Positions 45,801 to 49,228 are shown, counted from the first letter of the stretch. The stretch: 64,000 bases of DNA from Phallusia mammillata (GCA_965637545.1 OZ281495.1:12276001-12340000), one strand, 5' to 3'. Made by a program: numbers and translations. The notes: a model not told the origin generated them from the letters alone.

Positions 45801-48800
45801 ATTTATTAACCATAGGTTAATTTATTTTTCAAAGGAAAATTTAAACCGGCATGCAGGATTACCTAGCCTACCCATTGCCAAAACAACAATAAAAAGTATC
45901 AAGAATATTGTGCGCTAAATATTGCCTTTTTTAAATGTGCAAACCGCTTTAAACTCACGTTGATATGCAGTGAGCAGCCGTTAAAACCCATTGGTCATTG
46001 ATGAGGGATCCACCACATATAAACCCGGTAACTAAGCCATTTGGTATTTCATATAAGTAAGCCACGAATGGCCAATCTCCTTCGCATGCTACTTGACCTC
46101 CTGCAAAAAAGTTAGGTTTATAGGTTATGAAAATGTGGGTTCGGACACAAATTCAAGTTAATTTAAAATTTAACAAATTTAGTTAAAGACTCGGATTGCT
46201 TTGATTTAAAAGAAAGCTTGCTGATGAAACGGGTTTTTTTAATCAGTTACTGGTATTCACTTATTGAGTATTTCATCCACATTAAACAAAACTCAAATGA
46301 TTGTTTTTTAAAAGCATGCAGATTACCATGTTCCTTCGTGTGTGATAACTTTACGTGTCGCTTAGGTAGGCTATGTAGACTCCACTCACAGATTTTAATT
46401 TAGAACCTGAGATTTTGTTTGCAACTGACATCTGTTGCATACAACATAGAAGTAATGCTTACCTAAAATTCGTGGTCCAACGGCGCTAACTAGAGGTGCA
46501 GCACGCTCAAGACAAACACACGGGTTCAGCAGATTAAAGAAACTTGTTCCTGAACACAAACAGATTATGTTATATTAGATCATTATAATTTATCATTTCC
46601 ACGTGTAATATACTGTGCAAGACGTGTAAGTTACTTCATCTAACGTAAGTTACTTCATCTTTTACTTGGTCGTTGATTGCCACTCACCGTGGGTTGTTTC
46701 ACACTGCTCTACACACGTGTCGCACGTGTTGCACTGGCACTTCTCCATGATGCACTTCTCGGGATTCTTTGTGCCTAAAAGTGTTTTTATAAGTTGGATT
46801 GCTAATACTATTATTAAATCCCTTTATGATTAGTCTTTTTATTCTCCGAATAATCTCTTTCATGTTTTGTAACGGTGATGTTTTACGAGCCTCAAGCTTT
46901 TTTTTCATTTTTGTTGGTTTGTTAAAATTAGGATTAAAATTTACGAACTATATTGAAAAATACCGGATAATTTCGGAAGTTATTCTCCTTTCTTATCAGT
47001 GGAAAAAATAATGTTTTTTGTACATATTACCTTGGGTGGTAAACATTTAGTTACCTGCACACAAAACGCGACATAAGGGGCACGGTACACCCAATGGAAA
47101 CTTTGGTAGGAAGTTCTCGCAGTTCTGCAGACAGGCTGACATTTCTACATTTCGAAAAACAATGTTAGCTCTAAAATTGAACCCAGAATGTGAAATGATA
47201 CGGAATGAAGAATGACCGTTAAGTGCATTTGATTTTAGCTGAAACTTTTACTTATTTTGTAAGTGGATTGACTATAAACAGTGTCTAATACGCGTTCTTT
47301 CTGTTACACAATGTAAAATAGAACATAACACACAACATCCTATATTTTTGCTTCTGCACTGACCGTCACATTGATCCAGGCATACTCCACAAGTTTGCAG
47401 GCGAAGTCGGACGTGGCGGTCAAACGTTGGACAAGCCGTTGATGGGTTTTCCCATGTTAAGCTGTAGCATGTTTCGTTAAAACCTGTGCATAAAGAAATC
47501 TAAAACCGTAAGGTTGTAATCCGACATTCATTATTAGATTTAGTTGAAAGTGGAAAAGAATGAGAAGGTTGTAATTCGGCAAATAAGTAATTCACAACAA
47601 AATAAGTTTTTGTTGAAATATTTAACCGCAGCCGAACATAACCTTTTTTAGGTTGTTGTTGTTGTTATCCCACTTTATGGTTCTTTTTAGGCCTATACCC
47701 GATTTAATAATACCATAGTTCGGGTTCAAGTTAAGCCTGTTGAGCTACTGTTGTCATAAAAATATAAGAAGAGAATGAAGGCTGTTGTCACAAATGATTG
47801 CGTTTAAGTATAAACAAACAAATGTGCTTCACTTTTAACGTGTATTTATCCAAACTTACGTCCTGGACAAGTTGTACGTAGAGCGGTACCACATGGCCCC
47901 AAAGCATCCAATTCTGTGTCGGTGTAGCACTTGTTTGCTCGGTAACAAGAACCGCAATCTTCGGTAACCTCAGTGGGTGAGCATTCTGCAATTGCACCAG
48001 CGGAAAGTGTAGGCACTTCTGGGCGGCATTGGCCAACGCCGTTTTCCATAGCGTAATCTGAAATAGAGACACATATTTGTATGTTTCAACTACAGCATTA
48101 ACGATACTTTAAGGAAAAGAGCATGAACTTTAAGGCGTTTCACAAAACTGCAAGTTAATGTCAACTCTTTGCGCGTAATAATAATATTTAAAAACATTTC
48201 AATCCTAATAGTCTGATAATACTTTGACTTACTGATGCAAGGCTCCAAGCAGTACTTGAAGTTCAGTAACTGCGCGGCATGAGTTGCTTGGAACACTGGA
48301 CAAGACGCTTGGCAAAGTGCGGGATCTTGCCACGTATCCTCAATGCACCCCACGCCATCTGATGCAAGGTTGCGATATGTAAAACTGGACTCTGCGAATT
48401 AAGACAAATTTGCAATTGATTAGTATTGTACACATATAATTAACTTTTCCAATGCAGTTGGCACAAGGGCTACTACTGCAATAACAAACAAGCATTTTTA
48501 ACATTGTTACCGGTGTTTATACATATGGAAAGATAGAAGCGACAATCGTTGACTGCTCTGCAGGTTTCCTTATGTATACTGTATTAAGACAAAACTATTC
48601 AATTACCGCAAACTGCTCTGATGCAGTTCCAGCATACATCTCCTGGGTTTCCAGCTGAGCCTGTGTCACAGGGCAGTTCTTTGAAACACCATTCGCATAC
48701 CGTTCTCTCTGCGAGTAAACAACGTCAGTTTTAATACGTCCTTCCCATGTTTTAAGTATACATAAAACTTTTACTGACTCAGTTAAAGTAATTCAAATTT

Positions 48801-49228
48801 TAACATAATGGATAAGGTGCGAAACTATAGACTAAAAGCCTTAGCTTTGCAAATCGAAAATAAAGCTTTGTTAACCGAAATATAAAAGTCAATTACATAT
48901 CGTATTTTGAGATTCATTGAGAAGCAACGTAGGGTTTAGCAATATCCACTAAATTACTCTTAATTGTTATCGCCAGAGTATGAAAACTTTAGAAAAGAAG
49001 CTCTTGAACCTTCGTAAACCGAAATAAAATTAGAAAGATGACCGAGGTTCATTGCGATCTATTGAGAGAGAATTTTAGACTCAGTAAATAATAATATCAC
49101 TAAAACGCGAATAACTAGATTAATGACACTACTTTGTGATAAAATATAGCAGTCTGTAATACAGTACCTTCACCAAGTGTATATCCACAGTAACAGAACA
49201 ACGCCAAAATCAAGAACATAAACTTCAT
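42857..49228 (-). CDS. Modular serine protease P3, 555 aa: SP - ~280-aa Cys-rich region - trypsin domain
   Basis: Exons 49228-49168, 48708-48607, 48391-48233, 48057-47860, 47483-47364, 47144-47055, 46774-46688, 46549-46463, 46100-45959, 45538-45391, 44538-44409, 43768-43593, 43220-43101, 42904-42857 total 1668 nt in one open frame, all GT-AG. PR|ILGG, TAAHC, NNDTAL and EDACGGDSGGP are present. Confidence 0.85.

Follow-up and report, generated by a model that had tools for sequence, protein, structure and literature searches.

Mosaic serine proteases owe their biological specificity to non-catalytic modules, as in the two-chain clip-domain proteases of arthropods and the coagulation and complement proteases of vertebrates. 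In such enzymes Cys122 is the usual interchain anchor. To our knowledge, nearly all known mosaic serine proteases use a small common set of modules. The other proteins to be considered here are the vanabins, a group of ascidian-restricted, basic and Lys-rich proteins of about 90 aa with a four-helix fold, one of which (vanabin-2) has a solved structure in the PDB. Vanabins contain 18 conserved cysteines that form nine disulfides in a bow-shaped structure (PMC9486056).

We describe here P3, a protease gene located on the minus strand of a 64-kb stretch of the Phallusia mammillata genome (GCA_965637545.1 OZ281495.1:12276001-12340000; hereafter the window, on which all plain coordinates are counted). 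Like the mosaic proteases, P3 starts with a signal peptide and a disulfide-rich module whose exons are in phase 1, which an Arg|Ile activation site separates from the S1 domain, and it has a candidate for the covalent tether that is likely to join the two chains. It differs from them in two respects. The Cys spacing of its module matches no clip, EGF, kringle, CUB, Sushi, LDLa or SRCR domain, as the first-pass annotation had already pointed out, and none of these is found in the module exons by exon-level Pfam scans. Moreover, the interchain position Cys122 is missing from P3, and the candidate tether is at position 22/23 instead. No description of this architecture was found in our literature searches. 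P3 is a new protease architecture and not a vanabin: through exons of compatible phase, a protease has taken up a complete member of a lineage-specific orphan domain family. The fusion is transcribed, at least two tunicate species have retained it, and it is a clear case of recent domain shuffling.

Gene structure and transcripts of P3

The P3 gene was rebuilt from the window as 14 minus-strand exons with AG/GT borders, extending over 42.8-49.3 kb:

E1, 49168-49228, minus strand: start codon and signal peptide (aa 1-20), ending in phase 1; joined to E2 in contigs X2, X5 and X3
E2, 48607-48708, minus strand: module unit 1, 6 Cys; alignable with E2 of the stand-alone paralogs; present in spliced contigs
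E3, 48233-48391, minus strand: unit 2, 5 Cys in P3 after loss of one framework Cys; homologous to E5 (hhalign P 3.2e-5)
E4, 47860-48057, minus strand: linker and unit 3, 7 Cys including Cys133 (found in P3 and its ortholog only)
E5, 47364-47483, minus strand: unit 4, 5 Cys, one framework Cys lost; conserved N-glycosylation sequon NET
E6, 47055-47144, minus strand: unit 5, 5 Cys in the order C-x3-C, loop, C-x2-C-x3-C
E7, 46688-46774, minus strand: unit 6, 6 Cys
E8, 46463-46549, minus strand: fusion exon, with the C-x-C of the family's terminal exon followed by the activation site GPR|IL
E9, 45959-46100, minus strand: start of the catalytic chain, with the extra Cys307, Cys42 and His57 (AAHC); Pfam Trypsin, 39.5 bits
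E10, 45391-45538, minus strand: protease exon with Asp102 (D393)
E11, 44409-44538, minus strand: protease exon; joint with E12 at 44409 in X3 and X5, at 44412 in X1 and X2
E12, 43593-43768, minus strand: protease exon with Asp189 (D497) and Cys191
E13, 43101-43220, minus strand: GDSGGP with Ser195 (S503); beyond the transcript-covered stretch, placed by splice signals and homology
E14, 42857-42904, minus strand: C-terminal helix and stop, placed by splice signals and homology alone

Together they encode a product of 555 aa in one reading frame, in which the signal peptide exon is followed by seven phase-1 exons and then by the protease exons. Exons E2-E8 (102, 159, 198, 120, 90, 87 and 87 nt) are in phase 1 at both ends in 7/7 cases. 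The rebuilt gene thus bears out what had been read from the DNA at first pass, namely seven consecutive phase-1/phase-1 exons in frame between a signal peptide and PR|ILGG, which encode an N-terminal region of about 280 aa with 36 Cys. We count these 36 Cys in residues 20-302 (12.7%), and all of the Cys motifs listed earlier are present. The cleavage site GPR|ILGG is split by an intron, with E8 closing on ..GPRIL and E9 opening with GGQVAC.

In public runs from the same organism, 14-35% of the words of a 5.1-kb stretch are present, which is about the exon share. Four runs were mapped to 43400-49300, and single spliced contigs run from E1 or E3 through E12 (X2, 1875 nt; X5, 1865 nt, depth 201; X3, 1622 nt). 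The introns are removed exactly at the predicted GT..AG borders, including the joints 46688/46549 and 46463/46100 (E7-E8-E9). The Cys-rich and protease exons do not belong to separate transcripts, the outcome that the first-pass annotation had set against its own reading, because spliced contigs from three runs and two studies hold both parts in one molecule. The variants seen in the P3 transcript contigs (four synonymous and four conservative) affect no Cys.

Two further features of these contigs may be mentioned. The E11-E12 joint lies at 44409 in X3 and X5 but at 44412, with three other letters (AGG), in X1 and X2, which could be an allelic difference or a NAGNAG-type choice. Run X1 also gave unspliced contigs covering 44511-45420 and 45540-45809 (introns E9-E10 and E10-E11, on either side of E10), from either pre-mRNA or DNA in the library.

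An orphan family on contig C8 and an ortholog in a second species

Searches of the P. mammillata genome with single exons were too insensitive, whereas a profile search succeeded; a weak match with E4 had pointed to contig C8. This contig carries at least nine stand-alone genes, about eight in a tandem cluster at ~1.13-1.19 Mb and one at 6.79 Mb, so that the stand-alone homologs for which the first-pass annotation had proposed a search do exist in this genome. The matches of the E3 profile within the genome comprise seven cluster members, the distant copy and P3, to which exon matches add one partial copy. The C8 copies have E2-E7-like exons that are collinear with those of P3, with the same phase-1 borders throughout. 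Of the 35 framework Cys of E2-E7, 33 are kept in P3 (joined alignment; the paralogs are 27-32% identical), while the other two have been lost. A hidden Markov model built from five stand-alone copies, with P3 left out, gives 65.6 bits for P3 (E 2.9e-22) and 102.8 bits for the ortholog described below; among 400 shuffles that preserve composition the highest score is -13.2 bits, and vanabin exons score at most 2 bits.

Units of the pattern C-x3-C, loop, C-x2-C-x3-C recur along the module. The N-glycosylation sequon at the start of E5 is common to P3 and the C8 family, and so is an internal repeat, in which E2 and E3 together correspond to the C-terminal part of E4 followed by E5 (P 3.8e-5). E6 and E7 are weakly similar to the other repeat units, and E2 resembles the end of E3, so that mixed E2/E3 fragments are misaligned by MAFFT.

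The two differ at the end of the module. Downstream of the stand-alone copies we found no protease exon; instead, each closes with a short terminal exon, conserved among them, that contains C-x-C and, a few codons further on, a stop. E8 of P3 carries the same C-x-C, yet runs on into the protease; P3 is therefore a fusion derivative of the C8 family rather than a stand-alone member. The P3 module is an entire copy of a lineage-specific, tunicate-restricted protein family, an orphan multigene family of secreted proteins. A second difference concerns E4, where some C8 copies have a Pro-rich or (PPG)n linker, whereas P3 and its ortholog are without one and have one extra Cys there.

The stand-alone genes show some variation among themselves. 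E4 of two copies (L013:3679-3800 and L009:1283-1400) contains a collagen-like stretch in which PPG occurs four or five times in a row, while other copies are Pro-rich only. In several copies E4 ends with a GC-AG intron (donor GCAAGT; L005:2022-2040 and L013:3978-3995) and in others with GTAAGT. One extra A in a homopolymer shifts the frame in E2 of one copy (gB; L005:7190-7290), and a deletion breaks the frame in E5 of another (g5; L009:1950-2060); either could be a pseudogene or an assembly error.

We also searched 1.84 billion representative proteins with the E3 profile (HMMER) and obtained one true relative. A second match, to a thrombospondin-repeat protein, was taken as spurious. The relative is an open frame over an E3-like exon on a 527-kb contig (ENA assembly ERZ25067576, ctg10494), the DNA of which contains E2-E9 and E11-E13 in the same order as in P3 (E10 was not recovered), together with GR|ILGG, GDSGGP and Asp189. 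This ortholog is 38% identical to P3 over the first 349 aa and 34% identical over the module, and all but two of the 36 Cys of P3 are aligned with a Cys of the ortholog. Since the Cys are kept at such identities in the ortholog (34-38%) and in the paralogs (27-32%), their pattern is not due to chance. Both framework Cys that are missing from P3 (one in E3 and one in E5) are retained in the ortholog, which suggests that the two are partners in one disulfide. In a tree of the modules, P3 and the ortholog form a clade (99/98 support) apart from the stand-alone genes. The P3 fusion is real, is expressed as one transcript and is conserved in a second species. A few kilobases past the last protease exon found in the ortholog lies a hAT-type transposase gene (DUF4371, Dimer_Tnp_hAT; L017:2056-3795).

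Catalytic chain, candidate tether and origin of the fusion

P3 belongs to the S1 proteases (PF00089): E9 by itself reaches 39.5 bits, the cut-off being 20.6, and the triad, the R299|I300 bond and the disulfide Cys are present. The catalytic residues are H345, D393 and S503, and the S1 residue is D497 (position 189). The protease therefore looks active, in line with the trypsin with intact triad and Asp189 that had been proposed. The four canonical disulfide pairs (42-58, 136-201, 168-182 and 191-220) can be assigned by sequence. In addition, the catalytic chain has an extra Cys, Cys307, which is its eighth residue. The first-pass annotation had called it an orphan Cys22 with no Cys157 partner. 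The Cys is indeed there and both Cys157 and Cys122 are absent from the chain, which has no Cys between D393 and C433; its chymotrypsin position, however, is 23 and not exactly 22.

Cys307 is a Cys in P3 and in the ortholog, and a Ser or a Pro in 5/5 module-less trypsin paralogs of the window. On the side of the module, Cys133 in E4 is the sole Cys that P3 and the ortholog have in common and that is absent from all stand-alone genes. The idea that the extra Cys could tether the module gains support from this co-occurrence of two fusion-specific Cys, and Cys133 and Cys307 are, on the strength of co-occurrence in two sequences, the obvious candidates for an interdomain disulfide. The total number of Cys is odd in mature P3 (37) and in the ortholog (39), and seemingly in the stand-alone proteins too; therefore at least one Cys must be free or intermolecular, whatever the pairing.

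Some observations concern the proteases that surround P3. A neighbouring trypsin-fold gene (32318-32440, plus strand) has GDCGGP in place of the Ser195 motif. The first protease exon of P3 is 63-69% identical to those of three module-less neighbours (50144-52410, minus strand; 54836-56335, plus strand; 59020-60303, minus strand) but only 54% identical to that of the ortholog, while E12 shows the reverse. This contrast between E9 and E12 may stem from gene conversion in the protease cluster or from a partial duplication there.

Taken as a whole, we favour the reading that P3 is a mosaic secreted serine protease which arose by phase-1 exon shuffling and in which the module stays tethered as a targeting chain after activation; we consider this rather probable. 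In P3, a complete copy of the orphan family (E2-E8, about 280 aa with 36 Cys) has come to lie in a trypsin-type protease of the local tandem cluster, after the signal peptide and ahead of the activation site. Inside IL-G|G the neighbouring protease genes are interrupted by the same phase-1 intron as P3, and the exon join is therefore mechanically simple. The product would be secreted as a zymogen and cut after Arg299 (GPR|ILGG), either autocatalytically or by a trypsin-like activator. The module would remain on the catalytic chain through a Cys133-Cys307 disulfide and would act as a non-catalytic 'heavy chain' that brings the protease to the ligand or matrix of the stand-alone family. Most likely, the module is a tethered chain that targets or regulates the protease, a zymogen with its activation site at Arg299. 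P3 could then serve as a handle on this orphan multigene family, as its substrate is likely to adjoin the ligand of the family.

Alternatives, known domains and vanabins

The region could instead be a long activation peptide or prodomain, a folding aid or an inhibitor that is released on cleavage and not a tethered chain. The lack of the usual anchor Cys122 would fit with this, as would the odd Cys total under any pairing and the existence of the stand-alone relatives as free proteins. We nevertheless find it unlikely, since Cys133 and Cys307 are both kept in the ortholog and absent from the relatives that have one part alone, and since a 280-aa domain with 33/35 framework Cys far exceeds what an activation peptide needs. 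The fusion itself might be questioned as an artefact, either read-through or a chimeric assembly of two adjacent genes, as the transcripts are assembled contigs rather than single long reads and the runs are presumed to be RNA. However, identical junctions are seen in three runs from two studies, in contigs that are free of any intron; the join between module and protease falls inside E8, a single exon in which the Cys-rich part ends and the activation site lies; and the genome of the second species has the same arrangement. This objection is close to refuted, and we regard it as scarcely credible. Mosaic origin of P3 with a tethered module remains our preferred reading, and the alternatives that follow concern the identity of the module. 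One of them is that it represents an already described Cys-rich family (such as furin-like repeats, a GDNF-receptor-type helical domain or a stanniocalcin-like domain) hidden from exon-by-exon scans. The numbers of Cys in E3-E6 are odd in each exon, so that domains probably straddle the exon borders, and a known domain placed in this way could escape the database and fold queries, which used single exons. The best PDB profile match of E4 is to stanniocalcin-2, with a non-significant E value of 2.2. On the other hand, with the Pfam library at E<=10 the single exons of P3 gave no match except Trypsin for E9, and 23 exon peptides of family members gave no consistent match (31 peptides in all from P3, the ortholog and the paralogs), although local matches to half-domains would show; the E3 profile found only one true relative among the 1.84 billion proteins. 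In the PDB, neither sequence searches nor profile searches using E3, E4 and E5 gave a match below E 0.9, and the ESM Atlas queried with E4 gave no usable match. We thus strongly doubt that the module belongs to a described family. As to its fold, the first-pass annotation had proposed a helical module. AlphaFold indeed predicts three helices for E3 of P3 (nine rows) and helices at the same E3 positions in a paralog open frame made of E2, a stop-free intron and E3, but both models are of low confidence (pLDDT 54.8 and 43.7, respectively). These models give a weak indication that the module may be helical.

The other alternative is that the module is a diverged vanabin-type metal-binding domain. 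The two share some features: both are ascidian-restricted and dense in Cys, a helical structure is possible for both, and the short unit C-x3-C, loop, C-x2-C-x3-C of the module also occurs in the genome's own vanabin exons. When the C8 family is aligned with these exons, hhalign gives a score of 18.8 (P 0.019), against 12.4 +/- 2.2 for column shuffles, of which 1/100 reach the observed value, and single module units match the vanabin unit with P 0.004-0.01. The shared spacing motif is therefore real but weak. It does not establish homology, and several results speak against the kinship with vanabins that had been suggested at first pass. A six-frame scan of the genome with PF11437 detects five vanabin genes at 28-38 bits (cut-off 25 bits), all at C1:24529897-24544553, but has no match at E<=10 in P3 or in the C8 family. 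The hhalign probability is 2.4%, the model of the family gives the vanabin exons at most 2 bits, as noted above, and the PDB exon and profile searches remained without a match even though the vanabin-2 structure is in that database. The module is acidic (pI 4.5, K+R 7.2%), in agreement with the earlier remark that, unlike vanabins, it is not Lys-rich, and all of its Cys would presumably be oxidised, as the protein is secreted. Furthermore, it has a multi-exon phase-1 structure, with 36 Cys over about 280 aa in six exon units compared with 18 Cys over about 90 aa. We therefore rejected vanabin membership, and a diverged vanabin-type domain appears very improbable to us. A wider proposal would give the module and its relatives a new fold, a helical disulfide ladder restricted to tunicates and of common ancestry with vanabins. 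The latter would be a shortened cytoplasmic offshoot of a larger secreted family, and in P3 an enzyme of a protease cascade would have recruited this fold as a targeting chain, tethered to it covalently. We consider this proposal improbable.

With the module read as an orphan domain captured by a protease, the P. mammillata genome holds two families that are set apart from each other, the orphan family and the true vanabins, the latter being located elsewhere, at C1:24.53 Mb. The PF11437 scan also brought up eighteen identical weak matches (16.2 bits each) at C5:24162127-24288491 (minus strand), mostly about 1573 nt apart and in two blocks, which look like a tandem array encoding a Cys-rich stretch of 43 aa.
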